This document shows, piece after piece, positions 7,552-36,910 of a stretch of 64,000 bases of DNA; position 1 is the stretch's first letter, and every line of letters begins with the position of its first letter. This DNA is from Hypanus sabinus (taxonomy: Eukaryota): positions 140,244,001 to 140,308,000 of the forward strand of contig NC_082709.1 in assembly GCF_030144855.1 (NCBI RefSeq), given 5' to 3'. Both the position numbers and the translations under genes were made by a program. Below the pieces are notes generated by a model that saw only the letters and a program-made list of their open reading frames with translations, was not told where the DNA came from and searched no databases.

Positions 7552-7606
7552 ATGGAGTGGTCCGGAAAGTCCACGATGATGATATTCTGCGGTTGTTGGC
7601 TGCAAG
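7552..7606 (+). CDS. Ig-superfamily receptor, coding exon 1 (signal peptide N-part, MEWSGKSTMMIFCGCWLQ)
   Basis: ATG at 7552 with upstream in-frame TAG at 7483; phase-1 donor CAAG|gtaagc at 7607; joins the next exon in frame to give a leader ending VVLQVAVIETS. Confidence 0.8.
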
Positions 7607-7711
7607 GTAAGCCATGGCCGATACACTGGTCACCTTTGTCTCTTTTTTGTCTATACTCGCTTGGGGTATTAATCAGTTTTTTTTTAAAATCCTGTGCTCG
7701 GTTATTTACAG

Positions 7712-8056
7712 TTGTACTGCAAGTGGCAGTCATCGAAACGAGTTCTAACGTTTTAAACGGAACGGTCACTGGGAATATATTCCTGCCAGTACCAGTCACG
7801 GGCATTACTGAACAGATACAGACAGTGGAATGGAAGTATTCGAATGGGAGAAGTTCGAGCAACGTCGGCAAGTTGATATTGGATGCAGGCAATTCGAGCA
7901 CTTTTCTCTTCAACTATTCACACCGGGCTTCTTTGTACCCGGACGGCTCACTCTCGCTCAGAAATCTGCAGATGAGTGATTCTGGAAATTATTCCTGCAC
8001 TGTCACGGGTCAGAATGGAGAAGAGTTCACCCAGTTTACCAAAGTGAACGTGTTCA
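7712..8056 (+). CDS. Ig V-set domain exon, CD2/SLAM/CEACAM type
   Basis: Acceptor gttatttacag|, donor TTCA|gtgagt, phase 1-1, 345 nt. Reads NGTVTGNIFLP...VEWKY...RASLYPDGSLSLRNLQMSDSGNYSCTV, with Trp C-strand, DxGxYxC motif and no B-strand Cys; four N-glycosylation sequons. Confidence 0.92.
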
Positions 8057-8644
8057 GTGAGTTTGTCGATATGTGCTGTTAGACTCTTTAGATGGTTAAT
8101 AAACATATCTGTTTCTTTATTTTAATAAAATAAAGCTATTGGGGGAAAAATAAAAAATGCTCAGCTAGTTAATTAGTACTTGTGGAGCTAGAAACACAGT
8201 TTAACGCTTCAGGTTGTTGGCCTTTCATTAGAGAAGGGAATAATACACAAGTATTAGGGTCCAGAATACAGACGGGCGTGGGCGGGTGGGTAGGGCAGTA
8301 CAAAGAACAGCACGATCTGTGTTATCGTGGAAGCTAGGAAAAGCTGAACAATGATAGTGGTGCTGAGTAAAGATGGTGGTAAAGATTAGTGACAAACTGG
8401 AGGGGTATTGGGGAGTACACAAAATCAGGAAAACAAGTTAAATCTGAAATCAGAGATGCACAGTTGTAATCTGTGTTGTAACGCTTTCTTTTGCTGGGGT
8501 GGGGGGGGGGACAGTTGTAAGAAGCATGCAAAGTACCAACACTTAAGCAAAGAGGCAAGAAGGTGACAGAAAACAATGTGAAGTTGTTCACTTCAGCGTG
8601 AAAAATAGACAAGCAATGTTTTAACCAGTGAGAAATTAGTCGGT

Positions 8645-8840
8645 GGCACACACAGAATGCTGGTGGAACACAGCAGGCCAGGCAGCATCTATAGAGAGAA
8701 GTACAGTCGACGTTTCGGGTTGAGACCCTTCATCCTGACGGCCCGAAACGTCGACTGTGCTTCTTCTTCCAGGTGCTGCCTGGCCTGCTGTGTTCCACCA
8801 GCATTCTGTGTGTGTTGTTTGAATTTCCAGCACCTGCAGA
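8645..8840. mobile_element. Inverted pair of PLE terminal fragments
   Basis: Arms ~8649-8718 and ~8741-8812 are reverse complements; both hammerhead cores are broken at the junction. Confidence 0.8.
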
Positions 8841-8994
8841 TTTCCTTGCGTTTGCGGGAAGTTAGTAGGTGTTGGTGCATAAAGGGATCTGGAAATGATG
8901 GCACATGAGCAGCAGAGAGAATCCCTGCTGTGCAGAAGGCACCTGGTAAACTGGTATTTGTTGCAAGGGCGATTGAATATAAAATTGCAAGAGC

Positions 8995-9170
8995 AAACAC
9001 GAGGAAATCTGCAAATGCTGGAAATTCAAGCCACCCGCACAAAATGCTGGTGGAACACAGCAGGCCAGGCCTTCGTCCTGACGAAGGGTCTCGGCACAAA
9101 ACATCGACAGTGCTTCTCCCCATAGATGCTGACTGGCCTGCTGTGTTCCACTAGTATTTTGTGTGTGTTG
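8995..9170. mobile_element. Second inverted pair of PLE terminal fragments
   Basis: aaaatgctggtggaacacagcaggcc ... ggcctgctgtgttccactagtatttt, with a degenerate hammerhead at 9075-9108. Confidence 0.75.
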
Positions 9171-9269
9171 TATAAAATTGCAAGAGCCTTGCTGCAGTTG
9201 TGCAAACTGCATCTGTTTTGCTGGGACTTTAGGGCTCCACTGATGATAAAGGATATACCTGCTTTGGAA

Positions 9270-10015: not shown

Positions 10016-10019
10016 TGAA

Positions 10020-10520: not shown

Positions 10521-10521
10521 A

Positions 10522-13539: not shown

Positions 13540-16500
13540 ATCTCCAGTGATCATCCTATTTCTGGCCTCACTAGCACATGGCATGGATAGCAATCCTGAG
13601 ATCACAATTCTTGATGTCCTATCATTTCACTTAGCACATAGCTCCTTGAAATCACTTTACAGGGCCTTATCATCCTTCCTACCTATGTCATTGATATTGA
13701 AGTGGACCACAATGTCTGGCTGCTCACTGTCTCAATTAAGAATGTGATGATGAGCACATCTCATTTGAATTTTCGCACACTCACCTTAAAATGCATCTCT
13801 TGAAAATCTACATGAATAACATGATGCCCATTCATGTTTCTCATTAATTTCTCAAAGGAGGTGATGATTTTGAGAGAACAAAGACAGAAGATAAAGAATG
13901 GAGTACAGAAGCAAAGTTCAACCTATCCCACCATCTCAAAAACAATGGATCTAAAGGTAAAAATGATAGGTTTCAATGAGATCCTCACTCATTCTACAGA
14001 ACCCTAGTGAGTAAAGGCCCAGAGCCATCAAGCACTCCTCATATGATAAGCCTTTCAATCCCAGAATCATTTTGTGAACTTCCTTTGAACCCTCTCCAAT
14101 GCAGGCACATCTTTTCTTAGATAAGGGGCCCAAACTACTCACAATACTCCAAGTCAGGTCTCATCAGTGCTTTATAAAGCCCCAACGTTACATCCTTACT
14201 TTTATATTCTGGTCATCTTAAAGTGAATGCTAACATTCTATGTGCCTTCTCCACACTGACTCAATATCCTAATCTTTAGGGAATCTTGCATGAGGGCTCC
14301 CAAGTCCCTTTGCACCTCAGATGTCAAAGTGCATGGCAGTACACTTCATCTGCCACTTCTTTGCCCATTCTCCTAATCTAAGTCCTTCTGTAGTCTCTCT
14401 GCTTCCTCAATTCTACCTCGTCCTCCACCTATCTTTTTATTGTATGCAAACTTGGCCACCAAGCCAACAATTCCATCACCCAAACCATTGATATATAATG
14501 TTAAATGTAGTGGTCCCAACACAGACCACAGTGGAATACCTCTAGTCACTATCAGCCATCCAGAAAAGGTTCCCTTTATTCCCACTCTTTGCCTCCTGCC
14601 CATCAGCCAATCTTCTGGTTCATGCTAATATCTTTCCAATAATGCCATAGGTTCTTATCTTGTTAAGCAGCCTCCTGTGTTGCACTTAACATCTGAAATC
14701 CAAGTTCACAACATCCTTTGTCTAACCTGCTTGTTATTTCTTCAAAGAATTCTGACTGATTTTTCAGGCAATATTTTCCCAATATTTCCATGCTAACTTC
14801 AGCCTATTTTAGCATGTGCCTTAATATACCCTGAAACCACATCCTTAACAATTGACTCCAATAACTTTCCACCCACTGAGAACAGACTAACTGGCCTATA
14901 ATTTCCTTTCTTCGGCCTCTCTCCTTTCTTGAAGAGTGGAGTGACAATTGCAATTTTCCGGTCCTCTGGAACCATGCCAGAAATTAGAGATTCTTGAAAG
15001 ATCATTACTAATGCCTTCACAATCTCTTCAGCCTTGTCTTCTGAACCCTGGGATGTAGACCATCTGGTCCAGGAGACTTAGCAAATTTCAGAACTTTCAG
15101 TTTCCCAAGCACCTTCTCCTTAGTAATGGCGACTTCAGTCATCTCTGCCCCCTGACACTCTCACACTTCCAGCATACTGTTTGCCTCTTCCACAGGGAAG
15201 ACTGATCCAAAAATACTTATTCAGTTTATCTGTAATTTCTTTCTCCTCCTTTACTTCCTCCTCAGCATAAGTTTCCAGAAGTTGATACCTACTCTCACCT
15301 CTCTTTTACACTTTATATACTGTATCTGAAGAAGCCTTTGGTTTCCCCTTTAATTTTGTTGGATAGCTTGCCCTTGTATTCCATCTTTACTTTCTTTATG
15401 ACTTTCTTAGTTACCTACTGTTGGTTTTTAAAAGTTTCCAAATCCTCGAACTTCTGACTAATTTTTGCTTTATTTCATGCACTCTCTTTGGCTTTTATGT
15501 TAGCTTTGACTTCCCTTGTCAGCCATGGATGCATCATTGTGCCTATAGAATACTCCTTTCTTTGGGATGTATCCATCTTGTGCCTTTTGAATTGCTCCCA
15601 GAAATTTCAGGCATTGCTGTTCTGCCATCATCCCTGTTAGTGTCCCCTTCCAATAAATTTTGGCCAGCTCCTCTCCCATGCCTTTGTAGTTCCCCTCCAA
15701 TTTAATTCTGATACGTCTGACTTTAGCTTCTCCTTCTTAAACTGCAGGGTAAATTCTATCATATTATGATCACTGTCTCCTAAGGGTTCCTTTACCTTAA
15801 GCACTCTAATCAATTCTAGTTCATTGCACAATTCCCAATCCAGAACAGCTGCTCCCCTAGTGGGATGAACCATGAGCTGCTTTAAAAAGCTGCATTGTAG
15901 GCATTCTACAAGTTGCCCTGTAGGCATTCTACAAGTCACCCCTCTTTGGACCAGCATCACCCTGATTTCCCCATTTTACCTGCATATTGAAATCCCCCAT
16001 GACTATTGTAACATTGCCCTTTTGACCTGCATTTTTTAAAATCTCCCATTGTAACCTGTAGACCACATATTTGCTGCTGTTTGGTTGACCGTGAACAACT
16101 TCCATCAGGTTCTGTTTACCCTTGCAGATTCTTAACTCTACCGATAATGATTCTACACTTTCTGATCCTACGTCACTTCTTTCCAATAATTTGATTTCTA
16201 TTTCTTTTTAATCATCTGAGCCACACCACCCCCTCTGCCTACCTGTCTATCCTTTCAGTACATTGTGTATTCTTGGACTTTAAGCTCCCAGCTATAATCT
16301 TCTTCCGGCCACAATTCAGTGATGCCTACAATGTCATACATTTCAATCTGTAGCTGTGCTGGAAGTTCCTTATTCTGTATACAGTATGCATTCAAATATA
16401 ACACCTTCAGTCCTGTATTCAACACCCTTTTTGATTTTGTCACACTTTTATGTTGCAACTCTTCCCATTGATTGCAATTTTGCCCTAGCATCAGCCTGTC

Positions 16501-17517: not shown

Positions 17518-17637
17518 GTCACACTTCAGCAAATTGTGTTTACATCGGCATACTTGCTGGAATGGCAACAGGATTGCTGATCATCGTTTTAGTGTGGGCT
17601 GTTCTGAAGTGTTATAAGACAAAGTCAAGCAGGCAAG
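17518..17637 (+). CDS. Transmembrane exon of the Ig receptor (SHTSANCVYIGILAGMATGLLIIVLVWAVLKCYKTKSSRQ)
   Basis: Acceptor ttatcttctttcatag|, donor CAAG|gtaaaa, 120 nt, phase 1-1, in frame with the V exon; 23-residue hydrophobic stretch followed by basic stop-transfer residues. Confidence 0.88.
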
Positions 17638-18149
17638 GTAAAATAAAAGCCATGTTGCTCTGTTATTAAGAGAAAGATTTATTCTATACTAAATACAAAC
17701 TAAAGACTCAGCAATACATAAAGGATCAATTACATCTAGATTTAAAAATAAAATAGAAATGCAAAAAAATTGATATCTGTGTAACACATTCTATTGGTAG
17801 ATTTCTGTAAGAATTCATCAAGTTCACTAATGTCCTTCATTGAAAAAAAAACAGTTATTCACATCTGGCCTGTAAGAATTCCAGTGTTGGCCCTTAACTG
17901 GCTCTTGTAGTGAACTGGCAAGGCAGTGCATCTAATAGATGATGAAATAGTTGAGGAGAAACTCCAGTCCCATTATCCTGTAAGAATTAATAACAACTAC
18001 GGTCTGATGTTCAGGTCTTGGGATAAGTTAAATAAATGATCTGCAAATTAGTAATATAATTTCTGCCTTAATATAAACAATTTAACCCTAAGACCACACT
18101 TTTCACTTTATTCCTAAGCAGTCAGTTATAATTAGTTTGATGTAACAAC

Positions 18150-18395
18150 GAAGATTTTTATTTATTTAGAGATACAGCTTAACAACAGGCCAAACCACCC
18201 AATTACACCCACCTGACCAATTAACCTTCCAATCTGTAGTTCTTTGGAATGTGGGAGGAAACTGGAGCATCACAGGAAACCCACATGGCCACAGGGAGAA
18301 TGTTGAAACTCCTTATAGACAGCGGTGTGAATTGAACCCCGGTCACTGGTGGTGCAATCGTGTTACACTAACCTCAACACTACTGTGCTGCCATG
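18150..18395 (-). mobile_element. tRNA-derived V-SINE/HE1-like SINE
   Basis: Reverse complement has a ggcagcacagtagtg head, B-box-like ggttcaattc, and the V-domain-like tctccctgtggccatgtgggtttcc...gctccagtttcctccca. Confidence 0.7.
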
Positions 18396-19390
18396 AAAGG
18401 CGGTTTCCTGAAATGGTTTAAACATGAATAACTGGGTCATGAGATTTTTTTTTAACTGTTCTCCTAACATGGGTGGAAAATTTGTGGAAAAGTCCCCAGG
18501 AGATAACATCTCAATGTTTAAAAGAAACAAATGTGCTTCTATTTAGTAGGAATATCCTACTTTCTCTGTGTCGGTTTTTGGGTCTCAATAACAATTACAT
18601 GATAAAAGCGCTAAATAGAAAAATATTTGTTTCTTTTAAACATTGAGATGTTATCTCCTGGGGACTTTTCCACACATTTTTCTCCTATGTTAGGGGAACA
18701 GTAAATAAGGTGGAAGAAGTGACGTTAAAATAATAAATGCATTAGATTGAAAGAAATCATATTCAGATCAGATATTTAACTGTTAGCAAAATCATTTTGA
18801 CAATAGACAGGTGTGATTGCATTGGGATGAATGAACAGTGTTGCCTTTAAAATCAAAGATCAAATAAATGCAAGTGCTAGAAATGAAAGCAAAAATATGA
18901 TGATAACAATCAACTCTTCAGGTTTTAATGAAGTGTCTTTGACCTGAGATAGTAATACTGGTTTTCTTTTCCAAGCGTGGCCTGACCTACTTATGGTTTC
19001 CAGCATTGTCTTTTTTCATTACCACTTTAGTAGATGTGTGAGAATGTCATTGTTGGTTGTGTCTACCCAATCTAACTGCATGGAGAATCCAGCAACATTT
19101 TAGCATATCCCAGTAACCATTAAAGATAACTGAAGATGCTATTGACTTTGAAAACTGAAACAGAGGTTTCTAATTTTGATCCTGCAGAATTTTATATTAT
19201 TAACAAGTACATCAGTAATGAATTAGAAGTAATAGTCACTTCAGTTTATTGATAATAAATTTGGTTGTTGTGTAATATTGGAAAATATAGAACACATCAT
19301 AGATTTCAACCACAGACATCTCTTGGGCGGAAAAACCACAAGAACGTTCAACGTTTATTTTTACATGATATTCTTTACATTGCTGTGCAG

Positions 19391-19404
19391 ATATGGAAGT
19401 CTAG
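19391..19404 (+). CDS. Candidate proximal terminal exon (DMEV*)
   Basis: Acceptor ttctttacattgctgtgcag|, phase 1, TAG at 19402-19404, AATAAA at 19605-19610. Confidence 0.35.
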
Positions 19405-19719
19405 CAATGACCCCACATCTATACAAAGGAATGGACTATAAAGGATGGCGTGCAATACAGAAGTCAATTCTGTGAATGATTCATACAGAGAATATGAAAT
19501 AACTCATTCTATCAATTTCTGAACAAGTAAATGTCATAAAGAAAATTTAGGTAATACCAGTATGTGAACCAGTATCAGTGCTAAAGACAAAACAATTTCC
19601 TTTGAATAAATACAGCTTAACTTATGTACAATCTTGGCACTCCTACTAACCTAATATAATGTAAACAATATATTCACTTCAGGAAGCATAGCGTTTCTGG
19701 AACACCTTTATAAGTTACA

Positions 19720-21480
19720 CAAGCACAGTCAAGACTTATTGTCCCTGAAGCTCCAAGCTGTTAAAGGCTTAACATGCCTAACTAAACAAATTGCCTCTGC
19801 CTACACAATGTCCATATCCTTCTATTTTCTCCACATTCATGTGCCTATCCGAGAGCATCTTGAACATCTCTGTTGTATTTGCCTTTACCACCACCACTAT
19901 CACCTCACACCATCGTAAAAATAACTTACCCCACCCATCCCCTTTGAATTTACCCTTTCTCACCTTAAATGAGTGATCTCTGGTATTAAAGATTTCAACC
20001 TGAGAAAAATATACCAGCTCTATATCTATGTCTCTCAAGCTTATCTACGTTTAGCCAAGGTACCAGTACAGATCCCTGCAGAACACCACAAGTCACAGAA
20101 CTCTACCGAATAAATCACATCAGCCACTGACTTGCCCTTAATAAAACCATGCTGATTATATCTAATTCAGTCATGGTTTTCCAATTACTCATAGATACTA
20201 CCCTGAAGAATCATTTCAGTAACTTCCTTACCACTGACGTGAGACTCATCAGTCTATAGTTTCCAGGATTAACCCCATTTCCCTTAAAAATGGAACAACA
20301 TCAGTGACTTGCCAGTCCTCTGGGGCCTTGCCTGTGGTTAGACAGAACAAAAGTATTGGTCAAAGCCCCAGAGGTGTCTTCTCTTGCTCTTTCAATAACC
20401 AGGGATATATTCCAATAGGCTCTGGAGACTTATCTGCCTTAATGCTATTAAGAGACCCAACACTACATCTTTTATCTTGAAACACCTTTGCAAGTTAGCA
20501 CAACCCATACAGCTCACTCTATCCTCCACATCCTTCTCCTTGATAAATACTGATGCAAAGTACTCTTTTAGGACCTCACCCACATCCTCCACCTCCAAGC
20601 ACATGTTCCCTCCTTTATCCTTGTGTGATCCTACCCACACCCTCTTTAGCCCCTTGCTCTTGATGTATAGAATGTTATGGGACTGTCTTTAATCTAACTT
20701 ACCCAAGCACCTTTCATGGCCTCACTTGGCTTTCTTAGTTATCTTTTCTGGCTTTGTTATAATCCTCAATGGTTCTGTTTGGAATTTAGCTACCCAACCC
20801 TTACATGTGCTTCCTTTCTCTTCCACTAGGCCATGTGGAAGAGGCTACCATTATGCCCCTTTGAATGCAGCTGTGCTATTGCCCCTGATTAATAGCATTG
20901 CTTCCCTGCCATCCACTCCCCACATGCCCCACTTTTTACTCCCAGATCTATCTTTTCTAAAACATTAAAACCCTGGAACATTAGGCACCCATTGATCTCC
21001 CTCTCTCAACCAAGTTTCTGCTACAGCCACAACATCAGTTCCATGTACTGATCCATGTACTAAATTCATTACCCTTGCTCATAATATTTCCAGCAGCAAA
21101 ATGTACAAAATTGCAACCCATCTGTCCAATTGTGTCTATCACTCTGCTCCTGCCTCTTCCTGACATCTACCTTTCTCGCAGTTCTTCTACTTTCTGATCT
21201 GGTGCTCTGCTCTCCACCCTTGCCAAAGTAGTTTAACTCCCTCCAAGGAGCACAGATGAACCTCCCAGTCAGAATATTGACTCCCATGCAGTTAAGGTGC
21301 AGTCTATCTCTCTTATCAAGGTCACCCCTGCCCCTGAGGAGGTTCCAATAATCCATTCTAGACTGCAGCATCCAGGAGGCAACACATGCCATGCTGTCTC
21401 TTTCACAGCCACAGAGTGAGTGAGTCTGTCCCCTTAACAAGTCTTCCATCACTATTGCCACAAAATGGCCACTCCACTTA
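19720..21480 (-). mobile_element. Composite CR1 LINE fragments including an ORF1 esterase remnant
   Basis: HSFKVRKGKFKGD (3' end), EVLKEYFASVF (ORF2), DYWNLLRGRGDLDKRDRLHLN (ORF1). Confidence 0.8.
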
Positions 21481-23937
21481 TGCTAGCTTTTTTTACTGTC
21501 TGCTGCTAATTACCTTATTAGCCAATCAAGTATTAACTATCAATTTACAAATGTGCCTCTTTTTGGGTCCTTTTAAGCAAGTCCTGAGACATACTTCTTT
21601 TAAAGTGATACAACTGAAATTGACCAGAAGGTAGATACTCTGGAATCTTCAGGCAGAATCTACTTTCATTCTTTACCGCATATAGCAAGCCACTGACACG
21701 GTGTTCCAAGGCTATTGAGGGAAACAGATATTAGGAATGAACACTCATAGATACACTTCTGGAGCTTTAAAAAATAAAATTGGTCCAGGGCAGATATCAA
21801 AGCATCAAAATCTTGGACTATATTGCCACTGAAATGGAAATTTAGAAAGCAAGCTGGATAAGAGCTTAAGAGGAGCTACTCTGACTGAGTTTCAATGTCA
21901 AATAGTAATGATAATAATTCACCCACAGCCAAGCTACAGCAGTTGCCAAAACAACCATCTTACCTGAGTTACAATTAGTTATTTGGATTTTTTCGTTTTG
22001 GTATTCTTTTGATTTTCAAATATTCGACATTGGCATTTATTTTTTTTAAACAAATACTTCACATTTGGTCTTTTTTTTTTGAAAATTTTCCAGACAGTAC
22101 ATCTTCAAGTGTCATACCTAGGCACTCTTTGTATTCCCCCATTGGTATGAAGGCTCCCACCAGATAATTTCTCACATCTCCAAATTTCAGTGGTTTCCAC
22201 TATCAGATCAAGACCCAACTCCCAGATTTAAACATAGTTTTCACATTGAGCTAAGCAGGCATAAAATGAAATTGGAAGTGTTAAGGATTAGTCTGAGAAA
22301 CGGTCCTCATTTTTTAACCACACCCCTCTCTCAGCTGATGGAAAGAGAAGACAGGAAAAGACCTGATGATCTGATGCCAAGAACAAGGAGTTGCCCACTT
22401 AAGGTAAAGAGGAACAGGAATTTATTTTCTTAGAAAGCTGTAACTCTTTGGACTTCTCAGCACCAGAGAGTAGTGGGGGTTGACAAGCTGTTTGCTCTTT
22501 ACTAAGCTGTTGTCAGTGCCACGTCAAATTAGTACTATCTGCACTTTTAAAAAAACTAATGGACTTGCTGATGGCACTTCCTTTAAGATAACACAGCCGA
22601 TAAACATATAGATTTATAAAAACATAAGAAGTGTAACAGGATTAAGCCACATAGCCCTGTGACCTGCTTGACCTTTCAGTAGAGTATTGACATCAGATCT
22701 CTGCCTGTTCACCATTGCCCAAAGGCCAGTAACCTCTCCAGCTCAAACTCCAATATATTCAATCTTTACTGCTCTCACTGGGGGAGAGAATTTGCAAGAT
22801 TTTCAGCACTTCAGGAGAGGACATTTAACACTTTTAACCTTGTTCTGGAAGTTTGCAAGTTTTAGATTTCCACACAAAGAAAAACACATCAAGCAAACAT
22901 ACCTTTTTAAATATGGAAAGCAAAACTAGAAGTAGTGCTCCAGGCATGCTCTTTCAAGCACCCAGTGGAATTTCAACAAAAATTCCCTACCTTTACATTC
23001 CATTCGCTTTGCAATAAAGATTAACTTTCCATTAGCCTCCCTAATCACTTCCTGTACCTACAAGTTAATTTTGTAGAATAGCCAAATCGCTATGAAGAGT
23101 GATGCTCTGGGTTCTATTTAAACAGTAATATTCTGCAAAAGTGAACAACCATGTCATACAAACTTTTGCTGACTCATTCATCCCAGCATTTATCTTTGCA
23201 GACTCTTTGCATCCCTTTATATCACCAGTAAATTTTACTCCAGTATAGACCCTTTATCCAAGAGATTATTAAAAATTACAAATAGGTGAGACCCCAGCAA
23301 TTAACTCTGTGGCAGATGCTTTTAGTTAAAGTTTTCAAAGCTGATACTGAAGTGATGATTCATTTGTCCACTCTTTCTACTTTGTGTTGAGTCAACATTC
23401 TATTACCCTGCTGCAGTCTTGTTCCCACTTCCATCATTTTTCATTTTGTGCAGTGGAGGTTGACAAATATTTGCTCTTTGCTAAGCTGGTGTCAGTGCTA
23501 AGTCAAATTATTAGAATCTGCACTTTAAAAAAGAAAACTAATCGACTTACATTACGATAACACAACCAATAAACTTTATATATATATTCTTGGAAACATA
23601 TGCAGCAACCATATAAGAAGCACAAAAAATTATTTTACATCTATTTGTTCCAATTAATCTACTCTGCTTATTGTATTCACAAAGTCTAAATGGATTGCAA
23701 CATCTTCCCAAAGATGGATGTGACCATCTGTCTTGAAGTCCAGTGCTGATGCCACTACTCCACCAGCTGGCCGCTACGGTGTCATTTCCAGTCAGTTGGA
23801 ACATTTCCAGAATTAGTTATGTGCTTTTAGCAATTAAATTACTGGCCAAGCATCAAGATTTAAAGGCTTGAAATTGAATCCATAATACAGGTGTAAAATT
23901 CAAATGCAAGTAATTAACCAAATCTTCTTGAAAACAG

Positions 23938-23972
23938 AATCAGAAGTGGTGGCTGTGAAAGTACCAGACTGA
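23938..23972 (+). CDS. Candidate alternative terminal exon (ESEVVAVKVPD*)
   Basis: Acceptor aatcttcttgaaaacag|, phase 1, TGA at 23970-23972, AATAAA at 23973-23978. Confidence 0.2.
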
Positions 23973-24252
23973 AATAAAAATGCTTCTGGTTCACTGGTGA
24001 CCTCGAGGAATGTTAAATTCCTCTTCAATTTAGAGTAATTAAGGGTGCACTGTACATGCTGCTCATCGTGGTGAGGTTATATGCCTTGAATTAATAAATT
24101 TTAGGAAAATTTGGGAATTTTGGAAGAACACTTTTGATACTGCAGCTTTTCATTTAGTCCACTCTGTCTATGCGAACTACTAAGTATTCAGCTCTACTAT
24201 TCCCAATTACCAGCACTTAGTCCATGAATTTCTATGTGTTGATGATTTAAAT

Positions 24253-26901
24253 CAATGGTTCCATATCGCCTTACCCCAGGGTTACTGGGAGTTTCTATGG
24301 GGATGTTGAAGAAAAAGGGTCAGTGGAGGGGTGCTTGGTAGCAATGGGGGTAGCTGAGGGATTACAGGCTTAATTTAAGCAAGGAAATACTTACTATAAG
24401 CACTTGAACCTCAGTGTCTCATAATTGATTACAATAATCACCGCGGCTCTTCCTAATCTACTGCTCTCTTGTACTTTGCTCGAAGTGTGTTCTAGTTGTT
24501 GAAAAACAATGTGACACTTCAGTATTTGGCATATCTAGACTGAAGAAATCAGGTTATTTCTGGGCCCAGCCCACCTATCATTGCTGTTCTCTACTTTTGT
24601 AGTGTTATGTAATACGATTCCCATTCTGTAATCACAAAGAGGCACAAACCTTGCGAAATAAAAAATGGCATTGAATCTGCTCCAGCTCACAGCCAACCAA
24701 AATATTGCTGCCCCACTTTATGTACCTTCAGTTAGAGTGTCAGGATTTGCCTGAGCTATGTGCAGTCATAACTTTCCCCTTTATTGATCCTAGCACTTGA
24801 CGTTGGATTTAAACAATAGGTGATTGACCATGGTCATTAGTCCATAACAAAAATGGCAGAAGCAGATCAAACAATAAAGAATTGTACACAGTATGGTGTG
24901 CAGTATCTGAAATCATAGATTTATACCAGCACAAAGCAACCAGCAGTGGCCAATGTGTCTGTGGTGTGAAAAAGCTTCTTCAGATGAGGCAATAAAACCA
25001 GCTAGGTTATTTTACCATTTGAAGAGAATATACTCTGATAGAGCAAACAGGAACTTGGTTTATTTTCAGACACTTCATGAAAAATTTCAGAAAAGGAAAG
25101 CACTTCAAAACATGCTTGTCAGAACATCACAACAAACCAGTAATGGTTTGCATGCTTCATACAACATTTTATTGCTCATTGCTAAATCCGGAAAACCTCA
25201 TACAATTGGAGAAGAGCTGATTCATCCAGCAGTAAGAGGTTCTGAGTGCAGTTAACCCTATTTAAGTGGACCTTTTCCAATTTCCAAGCCTCTCTCCGTT
25301 GGAAGAGAAAGAAAGAATACCAGAAGATGATTTTCAAGTATACTGTGTCCACTTGAGTGAACCGTATAAAGACATGTTAAAGAGATTTCAGAGTTTTCTC
25401 TCAATCCAAATTCCTGATTGGGTAACAAATGCCATCCTGAGCACTTGTAATGAGGAATTAACAGGAAGAATAGAGGAAGAACTGATCTCACTACAGAATG
25501 ACTTTGAGCTGAAGTAAGGGTTCAAAAAAAATCACGTCAAAACTTCTCCTTGCAGAAAGAAGATGGTGCCAGCTACCCATGTGACCAATGAGGAAATGCT
25601 GCAAACAGCTACTTCTACACCTTCTTTTAAATATGCTTCTTTTCTGAACTGCGATCAATTGCGGTCGGTAGTTGCAATGTTTCTCTGTGTTTTTGGGCCA
25701 ACTGAGCAATCTGGCACTCTTCCTGTTTCCTGGGGAACTTGGCAAGGTTGGGAGGAGAGCGTGTAGCCATCATTTCTCTATGGCGAAATGCAAACCCATG
25801 GCCAGCTCTATTACTACTTGCCAATTAAAAGGTCAAGCAAGATTGAAATCAACAATGATGAGAGTGGAAGATGAGTGGGTGTTCAGCATTTGACTCGTCT
25901 CCCTCTTGTTGCTGCTGGAGGGAGGTGTATGCTTGAAAGCCTTGGTGCCATGGCTCGTGGCTCTGGGGCGGTATTAGGCAACATTGCAGTTTGATGTTTA
26001 ATGTCCTCAGCACTGAATGCACTCCGTGGTTGTGGACTTGTTTTGCAGGACTTTGCAATTCATGTTCCATGAGTTTCTGTTGTTTTGTTCTTTTTTTGTT
26101 ATTTGCGCAATTTGATTTAAGTGCTTTTGGTGTGGAACCAAGTTTAACACAGCTCTAATTTGAACTGACTCCACTCCTGGACCATTCTAGGGACTATGCA
26201 GATTGTGCTTAATTTTCTGCATGCTATTTGCCTGCTTTTTTGCTGTATGCATGATTTGTTCTTTTCTCATGAACTGGGTGTTTGATGTTTTCTTTAAATA
26301 GATTCCATGGTGTTTTTTTTCCCCTGGCTTTCTGTGGGAGGACAAGTCTCAGGGTTGAATACTAAATACGTATTTTGATAATAAATATACTTCGAAACCT
26401 TGTTTCTTTGAAATCTGTAACTCTGAACACAATCCTGCACTGTGGAAAAAGGGTAAGGTGTTATTTATTGCCTTTCCAATGTCACATTGAGTGGAGCGCA
26501 ATTTCAATGCAGTTGCCCAACTTCTTTCAAAACAATGAAATGGAATGCAAACTACTGAATATGGGGATCTGAGACTCCTTCTGAGTGCTATTTAACCTGA
26601 TGTTGAGAAGCTGATATCACTGTGCCAGGCCCATTGAAAAGCAATGAAGTAGTTAATGGTTGGACTACTACTGCACGTTCTAAAATTGTTGATGAAAATA
26701 GTTTTTACTGCAAATGAATACAGAAATAATGTTATTTGTAGCTTTTAGTAGATTTGATAATTTTTGCAATTATTTGCCACAACTTTAAATTTGCAGTTCA
26801 TCCTATTTTCTTTCACTGTGAATTGTAAATCAAAATTCTTTATAGATTTTATGTAATGGCCAGAAAGGGGATGGTAACCCAAAAATGTTTGGGAGCCATT
26901 G
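24253..26901 (+). mobile_element. hAT (Buster/Charlie-type) DNA transposon, internally deleted
   Basis: TIRs CAATGGTTCC / GGAGCCATTG; 8-bp TSD ATTTAAAT (24245-24252) / ATTTAAGT (26902-26909). Transposase N-terminus CLWC...KPARL..HL...IAKSGKPHTIGEELI directly abuts the C-terminal QIPDWV...EELISLQND. Confidence 0.85.
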
Positions 26902-28039
26902 ATTTAAGTAGTCTTCTGGATACTTCTTAAATGCAGTGAGATTAGCACCCTCTCAGACACTGCATTCCAAGCTCCAATCACCCTCTGGGAGAAAAGAAAT
27001 TCTTCCTTGTATTCCACCTAAACCTGTTATTTTTTAACTAAGTCTATGCTCTCTGGTTATGAATGCTATGTTGTGTGACAAGGTTTACCACTACAGTATC
27101 TACCCGATCTATTTCCTCACAATTTTGCACATTTTGATGAGGTCCCCCTATTCCCCATTTCAGGAGAAGGAATCCCAGCCTGCTAAATCTCTCCACCTAA
27201 CTGAGACATTTCATTCTTTTTTACTGGGTGTCTCTAGAAAAGCGGCTTATTAGCCCCTCGCTAACAGCCGCTTGACCCCATGGCGAGAAACCCACCTTTC
27301 TCAAGCTCCACACGTCAAGGGTGCATACGACTTTGGTCCTGTCAAACCCAAGAGGTGGGGATGCCTCGCCAACCCACATGCCGGCTTGTGTGAATACTGC
27401 GTGATTTAATGCCCCATGCAATCACCCAGCAGCAAGAAATAACGCTGCATAGAGTATATTTATGAATGTTAACTTAACCATAGAGTTATTCAAGAAAAGA
27501 AAGGAAAAAAATAAAAAAGGACCCATTAACTAATCAGTCAAATGTGCACAGGTGGAGCTCAAATCTCCCAAAAGCCACTGTGTCTGACGTGTACTCACTG
27601 CACCAACTCATATTCACTGCTCCCCAGTAGAAGTTCCCCTCCTGGGCTCCGTCAGATCGCATGTCCCCACTGGATCAAATCCTACAGCCAGTTCTCTCCA
27701 GCTTCTTCTCTCTCCATCTCTCCCATCTGCTCCCCCAGCGTTCTTTCAAATCTTCTCCCAGTTCCACCCTCCTGATTGAATGACACACACATTCCGAAGC
27801 ATTGCTTATCTTTAACAGTAACCCAAGCACTGCCGGTGGAACACACTGCTTCTACAGAAAAACCATTACATGAGATTCCCTGCAACATTAGCAGTAAAAC
27901 CTTCACCTGGGTATTACACTCTCCTCCCACCAAAAATTTATCAACCACTCATTGATAATACAGTTTTCAAAGGAATTTTGCAAGTGCCCCATCTCCAGCT
28001 TAATTACAACTTTTTTTTCATGAACATAATAATCCTAAT

Positions 28040-28800
28040 ATGTTCTAATTAATAATTTTTACTAATAACTGCAATGTGACATCCTAACTCATGTATTCAA
28101 GAAGCAGGTATGCCTTACACTTTTTTCATCACCCTGTCCTAATGTGTTATATGTTCAAGGAACTATGCATGTGTACGCCTAGGTCTCTGTTCAGTAACAC
28201 TCCCCAGGACCCTGCCATTCACTGTGCAAGTCCTGTCCTGGTTTAACTTACCAAAATACATCGTTTTACACCTGTGTGAATTTAACTTTATCTGTCATTT
28301 CGTCTGCCCACTTTCCCAATTGTCCAAATCCTGTTGTAACAAACAACCTTCTTCCTTATCCATTACACCACAAATGTTGGTGTCATCCACAAACTTAATA
28401 ATTATGCCATGTACTTTTTCATCCATATCATTAATGTAAGGCCATAAGTCCATAAAATATATTTCTGACAAGCAACAGTGGACCGGACACTGATCCCTGT
28501 GGCACACCACTTATGGCTGACATGAGAGGGCACAGTTTTAGGGTGCTTGGAAGTAGGTTCAGAGGAGATGTCAGGGATAAGTTTTTTATGCAGAGAGTGG
28601 TGAGTGTGTGGAATTGGCTGTTGGCAACAGTGGTGGAGGTAGATACGATAGGATCTTTTAAGAGTCTCCTGGATAGGTACATGGAGCTTAGAAAAATAGA
28701 GGGTTATGAGTAACACTAATTTCTAAAGTAAGTACATGTTCAGCACAGCATTGTGGGCTGAAGGGCCTGTATTGTGCTGTAGGATTTCTATGTTTCTAAG
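28040..28800. mobile_element. Two oppositely oriented CR1 fragments nested in the Gypsy element
   Basis: Minus: GVPQGSVSGP and KFVDDTNICG; plus: RGHSFRVLGSRFRGD 3' end. Confidence 0.75.
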
Positions 28801-31800
28801 TCAGGACTGGCAATCCATTTGTAGATGGTAGTGACATATCTCACGCGGGGGATTGGAGTAACACTCTGTTCCCTTGGCACAACATATGCCAGCCTGTCTG
28901 GGGGTTTCCTGACTCCTTATCACATCATCTACTTGTTCAGTCTCAGACACTGCTTGGAATCCTTCCTGTCTGCTTGGAGAGGCCTCACCCTGTCCAGTTC
29001 TCATGCCATCTGGCGACTCAGCTCCCCCATCACTCAACTGATCTCAGCTTCATCCCCAAATACTTTGGGGCCCAGTTTCCCTTCACTGTCCAACTGGAAG
29101 CCTGCCTGTCCACTGCCTAGTCCCCCAGCTACATCCACATCAGCATGGGGAGGTTCAGGAATCTCTTTATCAATTATGGGGAGTTTGTATAAGGTAACAT
29201 ATTACACATCCCCATTTCCTCATCTTCTGAGTCTGTATATCATTTAGTTGTTAAGTCCCCTTTGGGTCTCTCCAGTGATTATCTTTCTGTTCTCCCACGT
29301 TGGTGCCAAGTCCTCCTACTAGGCGTAGGGTCCATGTCAAGCTCTGGGTCAAAAAGTATCTCTTGTCCTAGAGGTGGAAGGCGGGTCCAGTGGAGAATTT
29401 TGACAGGTCCATTCCCGTCTTCTGGCTTCACCTGGGAAACTGGCACATTTAGCATCTGACTCTCCACCACATAAGGTATAGTCACCTAGTGGTCAGCAAA
29501 CTTATGCTTCCTTGTTAGCCCCAAATTTGTTATGAAAACTCTGTCTCCAGGCATCAGTTGGAAGAACCTAATCTTTTGGCCATGTCTCCTCTTATTTCCA
29601 TGATTCTGCTTGGTAGCAGAGACCTCTGCTAGATAATATGCCTTTTACAATTTCCTCCTCATGTCAGCCACATTGGTCTTCTGTGGCAAGTCTTCCACAG
29701 CAGTTTCAAAACAAAGGTTAACAGGCAATCGTCTTTGTGCCCAAACATCAAATAATATGGCGAGTATCCAGTAGCTTCATTCTGTGTACAGTTGTAGCAG
29801 TGGAGCAGATGCCCAAAATGCTGATTCCATTTGTTCTTCTGGCATGTCTAGCAATGTCTGTTTGAACCTCTTGGGCTGGGGATCACCTTGCCGGTGATGA
29901 AGCATAGTCCTCATCTTCTCAACTCCAAGCATGCTCAGTAAATCATGTATGAGCCAACTCTCGAAATCTCTTCCCTGATTTCTATGGATCCATCTAGGAA
30001 GGCCATAATGAACAAAATACTTCTCCCATAACACTTGGGCCAAAGTGGATCCTTTGTAGGGAAGGCTTGAGCATATCTGGTGTAGTCATCTATAATAACC
30101 AAAGCATTCACCATGCCACTGGAATCAGGCACTAGGGAGAGGAAATCCATACATACCATATCAGGTGCCCCATGGGATAAAGGAGAGGCAGCATCTTCCT
30201 CCAAATACATCGAGTACACGACCTAGAGCAGTCCTTGACCACAGGTTTCATTTGGGGCCAGTGGAACCAATCTTGAACCAATCCATAGGATCCATCAAAT
30301 TACAAATGCCCTGAATCATCATGAAGTGACTTCAGCACAATCCTCTTATACCTGTCAGACAAAATGCCATGGCCTGTCTGGAGGAGATGTGACCCAGTGT
30401 ATAAACTGGTTCCTCAACTCTAGTTTGTTCCATTCCCTCAGCAGCAGAGGTATGCCAGGGTGTTGTGTCTTTTCAAATTGGGCCGTATCGTCCATTGTCG
30501 ATGCTTGACCAAATGGTACCTATACAAGGGGCATCTTACTGAGCAGTGGCCACTTCCCCAGGACTCAATGCCGCCAACTGCTTTGTATTCAGAGCTGCCA
30601 GGTTGCAGACTTGTGAAATAGCGCAATCAGAAGCTCCCAAATGATCCATGGCTTGATTCAGCCCTGCCCTTGCTTCTGACTTCTCCGTGGTGGAAAATTG
30701 GCATATTGTTTTAACTCCATCGGCAGGAACGCTCTCCCACTCTCCGTCCACTTCCAGCCCTTCATGCACATGTCAGGACAATACATCTGCATCAATGTCC
30801 TGGCTCCCCGGCCAGTACTTCAGGCTGAAATCATAAGCAGACTACCCCGCCAGCAAACAAAGCATCCAGCTTTGCCAAGGTCAGGATATAAGTCAATGGA
30901 TTATCGTCAGTCCTCATCTCGAACTTGGCACCATATAAATAATCATATAACTTAACTTCTGGCCCATTTCAATGTCAGAAACTCCAATTTGTGCATGGGG
31001 TAGTTTTGCTCAGAGGGTGACAGACTCCAGCTGACAACAGCAACAGGTATCAACCCTGTGCCCTGATTCTGATGGAGAATGCCACCTAAGACCTCTCTGT
31101 TGGTGTCTGTATGTAGTACATAAGACAATTGGGAGTTCGCAAAAGCCAGTACATCTGTTTTCATTAGTAACTGCTTCTGCAACTGAAGAGCCTCTTTGCA
31201 TTTTGCATCCCATCTTACCCCAAAGGGCTATAATAAACTTTACCATCTTCTCTTTTCATCCTTTCTTCTCCAAGAACCGTACAGAAGCTGAATCAAAGGG
31301 TGACTGACTTTGGAGTAGTCCTTCACGAACCTGTCATAGTACCCACAGAATCCAAGGAACGATCATAGAGCACTCATGTTCTTGGCCCATAGCAATGTGA
31401 TCACCGTCTCTATCTTTGACAGACCACGGCTATGCACCCAACATAGTTGACATAACTGGCACTTGTCCTATGACAGTTTTAACCCTTCAGCTTTCAGGTG
31501 GCCTAGCACCTTCAGTAGCCTCACCTCGTGCTCTTCCAAGGTGGACCTGAACATGAGATCATCCAGGAACACCAGCATCTCAAGCAAGTTTATATCCCCT
31601 ACAGTTTTATCCACGACATGCTTGAAAGCAGTTGGTGTTCTTGATATGGTCTGCATCCTTTCAAACTGAAAGAATCCAAATGAACATATGGATGCCTTCT
31701 TCTCCTTGTCAGGCTCACTCATGGATAGTTGATAACACCCACTCCTTAGGCCCAGCACACTGAACCATTTGACTCCACTCAGTCAGGCCAGCGTGTCCTC

Positions 31801-32947
31801 AATCCTTGAAACAGTGTTCTGGTTGGAGACTGAGCATTGGTTCAGTCTCCAATAGCCAACACACATTTGTACCTTCCCATTCCTCTTACTCAGCACCACT
31901 ATGGATGACACATAGGCACTCCTGGACTCAGTGGTAATCCCAGTTTCTGCAGATGCTGCCGAATATCCTCCACCTCTGGGTATGTGCCACTCACCGAGTC
32001 CTTTCTCTGACAGGGGTGTCCTTTGTCACTTTGATGGTGGGGCGAGTACTATTGGAACAACCCACATCAAACTCATCAGTAGAAAAAAACATCTTCAAGC
32101 TTTAACACCTTCTCTGTCAGTCTTTTTTCCCAAGCTCCAGGCACCGGGGAGTCACCAAAGTTGAATGACTTGGCTGTCCACTTTCCCATTCCAGGAGATG
32201 GTCTCTCTCCTGCTTTTCTCACAGGAAAACTAGACATTACAGTCACTGAGGAACACAGTTCCTCATTTCTGCTCACCATCCAGCTTAGGATGGGTTTTCA
32301 CTTCCTCAAATCCAGCTCTGAGCACCAGGTGAATGGACAAGGTTTTCAGAGTACTCTCTCCCAATCTCCCCTTGCAGGCTTCTCGCTATAGGAGTATTTG
32401 TTCCCACAAGAACTGAAGTTTCACCCTTCTCATCTGGGTCTGTACAGACAAACACTAACATATCAAGTAGCCCTTGGAGGTAGCAAAGGGGTTCTCTGCC
32501 ATCCAGGACCGCAGTACTTCAGCAGACGGACCTTTCAGACGTTCTACCAGTTGCTGTCTTTTCACATTATCAGAGCACTGCCACTCATCCAGCATCTGAG
32601 GGGTCTGCTCCACCCAAGTCTCACATTCCTCCTTCCCCTCAGGGGTGGGTTTCACTCCTGAGAACTTTCTCAGCTATTGATAACTTTGACTCTCTGCCGA
32701 TGCTCTTTGCCACTTATCCACCAGGAACATAAGGGGTGATACCAGTTGAGAAGTTTAACCTCTCAGTGGAGGGCTCATTTGGCCTTCAACATCAGACAAC
32801 TCCTTCCCCTCACTCTGCAGAAACAAGAGCAGCTTGTCTTTATAGTCTCTGCCCTCTATGGGAAACTCAGCTTCCAATTTGGCACTCTTGCCTACACTCC
32901 CCTCTCTCTGAAAGTATGGACAGCCCAAGGCCCTGCTTCTCTGGGTA

Positions 32948-33225
32948 CAGGTGCCCCTCCCTTTACAAAGGTAGAGTGTTCCTATGAAACCTTTCTTAAG
33001 CCGAAATGGCGCAAAGCGAAGAACCACTGATTTATATGGGAAAAATTTTCGTAAAAGCAAAGATCCGCTTTGTAATGCGAAAACAGGTTACTAATGTAGG
33101 TCTTTTGTAAAAGCGAAGTGGTGTGAAGCGAACATTTATAAAGCAGGCGACATCTGTATTCTTATGGGTAACAGCTGGATCCATTGATGTCACATCAGTG
33201 CTAGTCTGAACAAACAACACATCTT
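32948..33225 (+). mobile_element. Tigger/pogo-like non-autonomous DNA element (one end seen)
   Basis: TA|CAGGTGCCCC start and repeated cgtaaaagcgaa-type motifs; right TIR not found. Confidence 0.4.
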
Positions 33226-33364
33226 TCCCTGCTGTTCAGTCAAACTGTTGCTCCCTGACCATGACTTTCCCTAATGCTCTAAAAGTACTTAAAAACCTAA
33301 ACAACAATTTATCTGTGCTGCAGATATCCACCTAGCTCACAACACAAGCGTTAGTTACAAGTAA

Positions 33365-33615
33365 GCAAATCACAAACAAGAGAAAATCTCTGGATGCTGC
33401 AAATCCAAGCAACACACTCAAAATGCTGGAGAAACTCAGCAGGCCAGGCAGCATCTATGGAATAAAGAACGATCAACCTTTCGGGCCAAGACCTTCGGCA
33501 GGACTGAGATAAGTGGAAAATGAGTCCAGCCAAAGGGTCTTGGCAGGAAACGTTGACTGTACTTTTTTCCACAGATGCTGCCTGGCCTACTGAGTTCTTC
33601 CAACATTTTATGTGA
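33365..33615. mobile_element. Third inverted pair of PLE terminal fragments
   Basis: Arms ~33415-33505 and ~33520-33612; both hammerhead cores mutated (CTGCCGA; CAGCCAA). Confidence 0.75.
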
Positions 33616-34609
33616 GTTGATTAGTTATGAGTAATCTCTTTGAATCACACCAACACTTAATCACCGTCGTGCCATAACCACGTAACTTAATCATTTTCCT
33701 GGGTAATAATTTAACACAGGCTCAAACACAAGCCCACTTAATCAATTCTTAGGGCAATCACACAGCATTCCACAAATTCAATACTGGAAAATAGCCTCCA
33801 CAATAAAACCCCTTTTTACAGGGCATCTCTAGAAATGTTAGCCCCTTGCTGACAGCCACTTGACTCCTTGGAAAGAAACCCACTTTTTTTAGGCTCTGCG
33901 TGTGTAGGGTGTATACGAGCAACACACACAAAATGCTGCCAGGCCTACTGAGTTCCTCCAACATTTTGTTTAGGTGTTGCTCGGATTTCCAGCATCTGCA
34001 GATTTTCCCTCGTTTGTGATAGGGTGCATGCACTTTTGGTCCCAGCTTCCCCATAAGGTTTGGATGCATCACCCACCCCAAACCCCGGTTTGTGCGAATA
34101 CTACTTGATTTAATGCCCCATCAATCACCTGTCAGCAAGAAATAACAGATCGTATACTGTGTACAATTATATAGAGTGTATATATATGAATGTTAACTTA
34201 GTCAAAGAATTATTAAAGAAAGAAACAACAAAAGGGCCCTCTATAATTAAACAGTCAAATGTGCACAGGTGGAGCTCAAATCTCCCAAAAGCCACTGTGT
34301 CTGACGTGTACTCACTGCACCAACTCATATTCACTGCTCCCCAGTAGAAGTTCCCCTCTTGGGCTCCGTCAGATCGCATGTCCCCACTGGATCAAATCCT
34401 ACAGCCAGTTCTCTCCAGCTTCTTCTCTCTCCATCTCCTACTGAAAAAGACCTCGACCTGCACCAGCATCTGAACACACATTCTGCAGCATCCCTTATCT
34501 TTAACTGTAACCCAAGCACTGCCGGTGGAACACACTGCTTCTATAGAAAAACCATTACACGAAATACCCTGCAAGATCATCAACAAAACCTTTACCAGGG
34601 CATTACCTA

Positions 34610-35070
34610 GGCAACAGCCTGGTGAATCTCCTCTGCAGTATTTCCAGAGTTATCACATACTTTCTATACTGTGATAACCCAAACTGCACTCAACATTCTA
34701 GACGCAGCCTCACCAATGTTTTATAAAGCTGTAACGTAATGTCCCTGCTCTTATATCCCAAGCTATGTCTGATGAAGATAAGCACTTCAAATGTCTTTTT
34801 CTTCAGCCTGTCTTCCAGTTCTTTCGCCTTTAGAGTTGCATGGACTTACATTCCTAGCTCCTTCTGTTCACCAATACCCCCTGTGGCCCTCCTGTGTACT
34901 ATGTGCACTCTATCAATATTTAACCTCCTAAAATGCGTCGCTTGGCATTTATCTGGATTGAATTTCATCTGTGTTGCTCTGCCCAATTTACCAGCTGATC
35001 AATACTTTCTGTTGCCTGAGACTATCCTCCTCACTATTCACAATACTGACATATTAATAACACTTTCCAT
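34610..35070 (-). mobile_element. CR1 LINE fragment
   Basis: Antisense CR1 text (aactgcactcaacattc...ttgaatttcatctg). Confidence 0.7.
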
Positions 35071-35859
35071 ATTGCTGTACATAACAAACAAAAAGCTCTA
35101 AGTTTTTTTTTTATTTTTTATTTTTTTCCCTGCTAGTTTACTTTCACAATTCACGTTATCTTTCTTTATTACTTGCCAGTCATTCTTTGCTGGTTTCTAA
35201 AGGTCTCTCCGTGTTCAAACCTACCACGAACCAAGCACACATATTATATGCAATTCCTTTCAATTTGACACTGAGTTTGAATTCTTTGGTGGGCCACTTT
35301 CGCATCATCCTAATTGTCTTTATCTCTCATTGAAGTATTATGTACTTTAGGGTCGTTCCACTTCTTGCCTACCATTTTACCTTTTCCATTTATCTTCTAA
35401 ATCCATTTTAGCCATCTTGTTAATTGCACATTGCTGTTTGCTTTCTGAAAATATAATCCACTAGGTTCTGACAAAAGAGTTTCACTGTTAAACCGCAAAA
35501 TGTTATTTTAATTATTTAAATATCAATAGTTTATTTTAGGATTATTAGTTAATCCTGTTTCAATGCATATGACGGCATCTTTAATGACTTTTCCCCTTGG
35601 CGGCTTCCACAACATTCAGGCATGGGCTGACACATGGTGTAAATAGCAATCATACCATGAAAGTGCCAGATAACTATCAAAAGAGAATCTAACCAGCAGC
35701 AACTTCTGTCCTTTATTAGTTCTTATCTTTACTCAAACTGACTCTGCATTATGATCATTGGGACAAGGTGATTTTACGTTTCTCATCTGATCTGATACTT
35801 TACTAAAGGGCAACAGCATACTTGTTTTGTTTCCATTGTGGGGTGACGTGATCGTGTAA

Positions 35860-36155
35860 CTGTTAGTGCAATCACTTTACAGTGCCAGGAATCACAATTA
35901 GTGTTCAATTCCCAATGTTGTCTGTAAGTAGTCTGTACATTCTTCCCATGACAGTACGGTTTTCTTCCAGGTGCTCCAGTTTCCTCCCAGATATACTGTT
36001 AGGGTGAGTGAGTAGTGGCATGCTACATTGGTGCCAGAAAAATGCTAACACTTGCGGGCTGTCCCCAGCACAATCTTCAGATTCTCTTGGTCATTCACAC
36101 ATTTCATTGTAGGTTTTAACATTTCCGTATACATGTCACAAATAAAGCTAATCTT
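35860..36155 (+). mobile_element. V-SINE/HE1-like SINE
   Basis: gtgttcaattcc B-box-like motif, ggtgctccagtttcctccca core, aataaagctaatct tail. Confidence 0.65.
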
Positions 36156-36400
36156 AGATCATAATTTTACCAAATACTCTGCCATATTCAACCCTGGTCC
36201 TTAGAAGTTGGCATGTGACAGCTACTAGATCATATCCAGTTATTTCTATTTGTGACATCAGTTCATCCACCTTGTTATGAATGTTATATGTACAGATATA
36301 ATGAGCTTGGAGATTTATCTTTTGATTATCTTCCCATATTGATTCTATTGGAGCCACAGATTGTGTTTGTACATAGTACACTCATAGCCAATTGCTAGCA
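36155..36400 (-). mobile_element. CR1 ORF2 endonuclease start fragment
   Basis: YNIHNKVDEL...GYDLVAVT. Confidence 0.6.
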
Positions 36401-36818
36401 TTGTGGCCTATTTATATCCTGTGGGAGGGCCATACCCAATTGTTCCTTTATTATGCAGGCTTCCCATTACACACGATTTTCCATTTGGAAAGATTACAAG
36501 CCTTGTAGTCTTAAAATTGAAATATAATTCAAAATTACTATTTTAATCTATAGCCCTCTGTTTCACTTGCAGGGTAGTTCTAATACTTGTTAAATTGAAA
36601 ACAGTTTTCAGTGATCCTCAATTCATCTCTGTAACTAAGCGTGTAAAAGCATGACACTCACAATTACTTACAATTGCTCACCAATCAAGGTATTGAATCT
36701 CCTCCAGAAGAATTTGTACTTTGCACTTTATAATCTAAGTTCATTGTGTAAATGTATATATGGTTTTGTCCATTTTGTTTGAAAAGAGTAATTTTGTGGT
36801 ACAATGTTGTCCAAGCAG

Positions 36819-36910
36819 GTGAAAGAAACAAGACTGAACAATCAGATGGAATCAGAAGAAGTGCGAATGATGACATCTATGTAAAAATGGGGAAAGTGCC
36901 AGATTTGTAA
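36819..36910 (+). CDS. Likely terminal exon: cytoplasmic tail GERNKTEQSDGIRRSANDDIYVKMGKVPDL*
   Basis: Acceptor gttgtccaagcag| (modest pyrimidine tract), phase 1 in frame with the TM exon, acidic-flanked Y-V-K-M motif, TAA at 36908, AATAAA at 37323-37328, inside a transposon-free block. Confidence 0.55.

Follow-up and report, generated by a model that had tools for sequence, protein, structure and literature searches.

An unnamed family of single-V-domain membrane proteins with a conserved Y-x-x-M tail motif in cartilaginous fishes, predicted from a Hypanus sabinus locus

A five-exon gene in the Hypanus sabinus window

The stretch of DNA analysed here, which we call the window, comprises 64,000 nucleotides of the stingray Hypanus sabinus (NCBI RefSeq assembly GCF_030144855.1, contig NC_082709.1, positions 140,244,001 to 140,308,000 of the forward strand), and all coordinates below are positions within it, on the + strand unless stated otherwise. 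Between 7552 and 36910 the window holds a gene whose sequence predicts five exons and, as the usual product, a 236-aa type I membrane glycoprotein. Exon 1 (7552-7606) supplies the start codon and most of the signal peptide in 18 codons plus one nucleotide, ends in phase 1 at a GT donor and is co-linear with the orthologs P0001-P0005. Exon 2 (7712-8056) encodes a V-set immunoglobulin (Ig) domain that lacks the B-strand Cys, retains the F-strand YSC and carries four N-x-S/T sites, as judged from the Pfam V-set match, an AlphaFold2 model and 91% identity to the Hemitrygon akajei ortholog. Exon 3 (13858-13956), 99 nt long with AG/GT borders and phase 1-1, adds a stalk of 33 aa whose glycosylation sites are NLS and NGS. 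Exon 4 (17518-17637) encodes Cys173 within an 'NC' motif, a transmembrane helix at about residues 174-196 (the Kyte-Doolittle profile peaks at 173-196), basic residues next to the membrane and Cys198, the cysteines being conserved; the helix is hydrophobic and uncharged, as the initial annotation of this locus held. Exon 5 (36819-36910) provides the cytoplasmic tail, ending ...NDDIYVKMGKVPDL and the stop codon, is 97% identical to the tail of P0001 and is the same exon that is present in the models of nine other species. The codons of the tail motif Y-x-x-M, here Y227-V-K-M230, lie at 36878-36889, and the first AATAAA 3′ of the stop codon, a candidate polyadenylation signal by pattern match only, lies at 37323-37328.

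The initial annotation had joined four of these exons (7552-7606, 7712-8056, 17518-17637 and 36819-36910) into a 203-aa protein. Their placement stands, as AG/GT borders and phase 1 are read in the window sequence at all exon junctions, the join without exon 3 does give a 203-aa open reading frame (ORF), and the join of 17637 to 36819 is that of the predicted proteins of nine other species. The exon at 13858-13956 had been overlooked. P0001, the 'uncharacterized protein' of the red stingray Hemitrygon akajei (235 aa, predicted) and the top match in a word-indexed search with the V domain, has 33 residues between its V and transmembrane parts that are missing from the four-exon model, and tblastn located these residues (134-166) at window positions 13860-13958 with 97% identity. 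Over exons 1 to 5 the five-exon protein is 83, 91, 97, 90 and 97% identical to P0001. Because exon 3 is intact, 97% identical to its red stingray counterpart and present as a homolog in 11 of the 12 predicted ortholog protein models retrieved, we take 236 aa to be the length of the usual product. The linker between V domain and membrane is then about 40 aa, and the 'very short stalk' described earlier is true only of a minor predicted isoform. It is very improbable that the 203-aa short-stalk protein is the main product in Hypanus sabinus: exon 3 can be skipped in frame, as its homolog is in the predicted catshark isoform X2 (P0164, 201 aa), the only match to the four-exon form, but its intact AG/GT borders and the FN(L/Q)(S/T)HH stalk motif retained across batoids argue against this, and the sequences point to the shorter form as a possible minor isoform. 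The tail, too, had been read as ending at its motif; YVKM is indeed encoded, but the tail runs past it, to ...DDIYVKMGKVPDL-stop.

Two features of the introns touch on how the gene is read. Intron 1 (7607-7711) is open and in frame, such that the signal and V exons form a single 176-aa ORF over 7552-8082, by which ORF-based gene calls could be misled. Reading through the exon-4 donor, window positions 17638-17669 encode G-K-I-K-A-M-L-L-C-Y-stop, with an AATAAA at 17641-17646, and the predicted Mobula protein (P0002) has the nearly identical C-terminus GKIRKAMLLCY. This likeness may point to an isoform of myliobatiform rays that lacks the tail because of intron retention or intronic polyadenylation, or simply to recent shared intron sequence. 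Elsewhere in the window, neither a paralogous V exon nor a hidden C2 exon was found by tblastn with the model and with SLAM and CEACAM C2 domains or by a scan for the F-strand motif.

Orthologs and conserved features in cartilaginous fishes

Exhaustive phmmer, two profile searches and cluster look-ups retrieved orthologs in 11 chondrichthyan species, the word-indexed V-domain search having led to predicted proteins of five cartilaginous fishes. Among rays and skates they come from Hemitrygon, Mobula, Pristis, Narcine, Rhinoraja and Leucoraja, among sharks from Heterodontus, Scyliorhinus, Mustelus, Carcharodon and Cetorhinus (the basking shark, P0029), and among chimaeras from Callorhinchus. 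In each retrieved species one gene was found, and the complete ortholog models are 201-236 aa long with a single Ig domain. The databases call them 'uncharacterized protein' or, loosely, 'VSTM5-like' (Heterodontus, NCBI) or 'AGER-like'. In the profile search the orthologs score above 260 bits, while the next matches, tetrapod proteins of CEACAM-like type, reach 55 bits at most. The same five-exon layout recurs in Callorhinchus (locus L001), where it fits into 5.9 kb; this places the origin of the gene structure before the chimaera-elasmobranch split. No bony-vertebrate ortholog was found in two profile searches requiring shared words or among the 150 matches listed by an exhaustive V-domain phmmer search, mostly giant multi-Ig proteins; weak single-domain relatives such as VSTM5 could escape both kinds of search. 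The literature, searched by LOC identifier and by topic, yielded no paper on the family. As judged from these sequences, the gene is real, intact and conserved, and it belongs to an unnamed, unstudied family of rays, skates, sharks and a chimaera; no clear orthology to a described gene was found, in keeping with the initial annotation.

We compared conserved positions in an alignment of 12 sequences, with tail counts taken over the 10 that have the canonical last exon, the window included. The B-strand Cys, whose absence from the Hypanus domain had been noted before, is missing in 12/12, and the F-strand Cys is retained in all sequences except that of Narcine. Two further features hardly vary, an NGT site at the domain's start and the stretch R-x-x-(I/L)-Y-P-(N/D)-G-S-L...D-(S/T)-G-x-Y. 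Directly outside the transmembrane helix a Cys ('NC') is present in 11 sequences, the Callorhinchus Cys lying four residues earlier, and a juxtamembrane cytoplasmic Cys amid basic residues is conserved as well.

The tail is 40 aa long and basic, and holds a single tyrosine within D-(I/V/T)-Y-x-x-M, some 28 residues away from the membrane and close to the C-terminus. The Y-x-x-M motif, proposed earlier from the Hypanus sequence, is kept in all ten complete tails in the variants YVKM, YEKM, YESM and YENM, with Met at +3 never swapped for another hydrophobic residue. Five tail positions never vary, D(-2), Y, M(+3), G(+4) and V(+6), and together they form a D-x-Y-x-x-M-G-x-V block; outside it, invariance among cytoplasmic residues is limited to one juxtamembrane Ser, which the transmembrane exon encodes. 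By the spread of the species compared, conservation of Y-x-x-M spans roughly 400 million years or more. The two models without the motif, a Mobula model that reads through the exon-4 donor and Narcine isoform X2 (P0004), which ends in a transposon-like segment, are on sequence grounds annotation variants; the P0004 tail is probably a transposon-derived mis-annotation and not a true alternative exon.

The tail motif and a proposed co-signalling function

We propose a model in which the family acts as a co-signalling receptor, possibly dimeric, that recruits the p85 subunit of phosphoinositide 3-kinase (PI3K), and we consider this the most likely function, with about even confidence, by inference from its motifs. 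The V domain would use its GFCC′ face for cell-cell recognition, binding either homophilically or to a neighbouring Ig-superfamily protein on the cell surface. The stalk Cys may link two chains into a covalent homodimer, as in CD28, CTLA-4 and ICOS. The tail tyrosine could be phosphorylated by Src-family kinases, for which the acidic residues upstream and the I/V at -1 provide the context that these enzymes prefer. The phosphorylated tyrosine would then recruit the SH2 domains of class IA PI3K p85 (consensus pY-[M/V/I/E]-x-M), and the receptor would signal without a charged-transmembrane adaptor. The Y-x-x-M motifs of CD28, CTLA-4 and ICOS bind p85 (PMC4255484). The invariance of Met(+3) favours a Met-specific reader such as a p85 SH2 domain over AP-2 mu2, which accepts L/I/F/V/M.

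Against this model stands the identity of the motif itself. The stingray YVKM is that of CTLA-4, which also interacts with AP-1/AP-2 in its unphosphorylated state and with SHP-2 in its phosphorylated state (PMC4255484), and by this analogy an endocytic role is a live rival that may also coexist with signalling. In its strict form this alternative holds that the conserved tyrosine is mainly a YxxPhi sorting signal, bound by AP-2 (or AP-1/AP-3) while unphosphorylated, such that the receptor is constantly internalised or stored inside the cell, as CTLA-4 is, and PI3K signalling is secondary or nil. The distance of the motif from the membrane and its position near the C-terminus are like those of many sorting signals. 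However, Met(+3) is invariant in 10/10 tails across the chimaera-elasmobranch split while mu2 tolerates L/I/F/V, the acidic residues and the I/V at -1 suit a kinase substrate, and the two roles coexist in CTLA-4, so that they are no strict alternatives. We regard a predominantly sorting function as unlikely on balance, although it is the strongest of the competing explanations.

Of the living lineages whose immunity relies on antibodies and T cells, cartilaginous fishes are the oldest, and the inventory of their co-receptors is still being compiled. The shark CD28 family was extended only in 2024 (PMC11599192). The family described here, conserved from chimaeras to stingrays, joins a binding domain of SLAM/CEACAM type to a tail motif and stalk Cys of CD28/CTLA-4 type. 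If it is expressed on lymphocytes, the co-signalling model would make it a second, independently built route to PI3K co-stimulation, as well as a useful marker for the shuffling of signalling tails among Ig-superfamily receptors; were it instead expressed in other places, such as neurons, as VSTM5 is, it would be an ordinary adhesion-type protein.

Placement of the V domain and possible origins of the family

Exon 2 of the window matches Pfam V-set with an E value of 7.8e-9, and its AlphaFold2 model is confident, with a predicted local distance difference test score (pLDDT) of 84.7. Among Swiss-Prot models the best fold matches are SLAMF6 (template modelling score 0.88, E 6e-10), SLAMF8, SLAMF5, VSTM5, CEACAM15 and CD48, and Pfam Receptor_2B4 exceeds its curated cut-off in two of five orthologs. 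The family profile searched against the PDB finds the N-domains of CEACAM6, 1, 8 and 7 (E 4e-10 to 5e-6). In the Atlas, the feature search leads to VSTM5 clusters and the structure search to CD48, SLAMF5, VSTM5 and 2B4. On this sequence and model evidence the domain belongs to the disulfide-less CD2/SLAM/CEACAM/VSTM5 group, of which the evidence picks no single member. The earlier description of a CD2/SLAM-type V domain without a C2 domain is borne out to that extent. The accompanying suggestion of an undescribed architecture holds in so far as no described ortholog was found; a single disulfide-less V domain with transmembrane segment and tail is, however, already present in VSTM5 and CEACAM19, and the orthologs are already listed by NCBI as predicted, uncharacterized proteins. 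Rather than a new kind of receptor, the architecture recombines known modules and has VSTM5 and CEACAM19 as precedents.

Two established families were considered for membership and rejected. With CD2/SLAM receptors (SLAMF5, SLAMF6, SLAMF8, 2B4, CD48 and CD2) the stingray family shares an N-terminal V-set domain without the canonical disulfide, and its closest non-orthologous shark protein is named SLAMF5/Ly9-like. It differs from them in having no membrane-proximal C2 domain, no immunoreceptor tyrosine-based switch motif (ITSM, TxYxxV/I) and no proline-rich tail, and in keeping the F-strand Cys and possessing a stalk Cys and a YxxM tail motif; the V type agrees with CD2/SLAM membership, but the window has no C2-like exon and the tail neither an ITSM nor a proline-rich segment. 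With CD28, CTLA-4, ICOS, CD28H and CD28X it has in common the lone V domain, an extracellular Cys next to the membrane and a short tail with a conserved YxxM, which is YVKM in CTLA-4 as in the stingray and YEDM in CD28H and CD28X (PMC11599192). The CD28-family V signature, YxC followed by PPP or EIP in complementarity-determining region 3 (CDR3) (PMC11599192), is absent, as YSC is followed by TVTGQNGEEF, and the B-strand Cys is lacking. The CDR3 and cysteine signatures speak against CD28-family membership, although YxxM and stalk Cys agree with it at the level of sequence. The top fold matches of the V model include no CD28-family structure, and the orthologs' accessions are missing from the supplements of the 2024 survey (PMC11599192).

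JAML (AMICA1) is a V-set receptor that recruits PI3K via a tail motif and costimulates gamma-delta T cells. It recurs among the sequence and structure matches of the stingray family, from which it is set apart by a longer tail and by a second V domain, both of its V domains having canonical disulfides.

Among named mammalian proteins of the same layout the closest is VSTM5, an approximately 200-aa membrane glycoprotein that induces membrane protrusions in neurons and other cells and likewise consists of a signal peptide, one 2B4-like V domain, a transmembrane segment and a short tail. The family could thus be the cartilaginous-fish ortholog or co-ortholog of VSTM5, with a tail that diverged in one lineage. 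Besides the equal size and layout, this explanation fits the name 'VSTM5-like' that NCBI gives to the Heterodontus protein, the VSTM5 clusters of the Atlas feature search (0.95-0.96, up to 206/256 shared features) and the fold matches to human, mouse and rat VSTM5 (E 5e-8 to 9e-8), whose V-domain identities are the highest of the list. These identities are only 23-26%, however, and not above that to SLAMF8 (23%). For the C-terminal half, an Atlas search with P0001 residues 134-235 (stalk, transmembrane segment and tail) listed no cluster of VSTM5_C (PF28389), a domain that spans transmembrane segment and tail, the best hit being an unnamed cluster at 0.84; Pfam likewise gave no VSTM5_C hit, in a version that is apparently older than this model. 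VSTM5 was also absent at E <= 10 from the profile search, which was itself limited by shared words, and the CD200-like neighbour of the Callorhinchus gene described below is unlike the surroundings of human VSTM5 at 11q21. The tail of mammalian VSTM5 is not known to have a YxxM. Taken together we consider orthology to VSTM5 rather improbable.

A broader evolutionary extension of the co-signalling model would make the family an ancient receptor of costimulatory type that dates back at least to the chimaera-elasmobranch split. It would descend from the CD2/SLAM/CEACAM/VSTM5 lineage, separately from CD28, and would have acquired a disulfide-linked dimer and YxxM by convergence; the adjacent CD200-like gene would encode its partner in a receptor-ligand pair, and in bony vertebrates the receptor would have been lost or have become unrecognisable. 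As a whole, we offer this scenario as speculative and doubtful.

Still less probable is that the V domain is of CEACAM N type and the family a divergent CEACAM member akin to CEACAM19, CEACAM3 and CEACAM4, with which it shares one disulfide-less IgV domain, a transmembrane segment, a tail with a tyrosine motif and the YPNGSL...NDxGxY stretch. The best non-ortholog profile matches are CEACAM proteins (P0169 at 55 bits, then Xenopus CEACAM-related, CEACAM21 and CEACAM4-like), CEACAM6, 1, 8 and 7 are matched in the PDB, the stretch R-x-x-(I/L)-Y-P-N-G-S-L...N-D-(S/T)-G-x-Y is common to both families, and CEACAMs are reported from cartilaginous fishes, CEACAM19 consisting of IgV, transmembrane segment and a tail with an immunoreceptor tyrosine-based activation motif (ITAM) (PMC13278318). 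This likeness, however, lies mostly in the E-F strand region common to many Ig domains, and fold searches slightly favour SLAM members. The tails of these CEACAMs are of ITAM type and not YxxM, while the stingray tail has no ITIM (immunoreceptor tyrosine-based inhibition motif), ITSM or ITAM, and one conserved gene per retrieved species contrasts with the rapid turnover of the CEACAM family (PMC13278318).

In Callorhinchus milii the ortholog has a neighbour, at 17781-25927 (minus) of locus L001, which lies tail-to-tail with it, 1.9 kb apart, and encodes a 412-aa protein with V and C2-set_2 domains. Its V exon matches nectin-3 and OX-2/CD200 in the PDB (E ~1e-13) and CD200 clusters in the Atlas (0.98), by which sequence evidence it is CD200-like. 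In human, BTLA lies tail-to-tail with CD200; BTLA is not among the sequence or fold matches of the stingray V domain and family profile.

Apart from this gene, the window contains no cellular gene but only pieces of retroelements. The flanks of the gene carry reverse-transcriptase-like ORFs and a gag-like ORF, at 1179-1775, 44025-45453, 50246-50785 (minus) and 56439-56855 (minus), and similar debris lies within its introns, for example at 14373-16491 on the minus strand. Short matches to the aberrant C-terminus of Narcine P0004 ('...SKTKELIVDF...') occur in the window at 1683-1769, 52910-53008 and 56365-56463.

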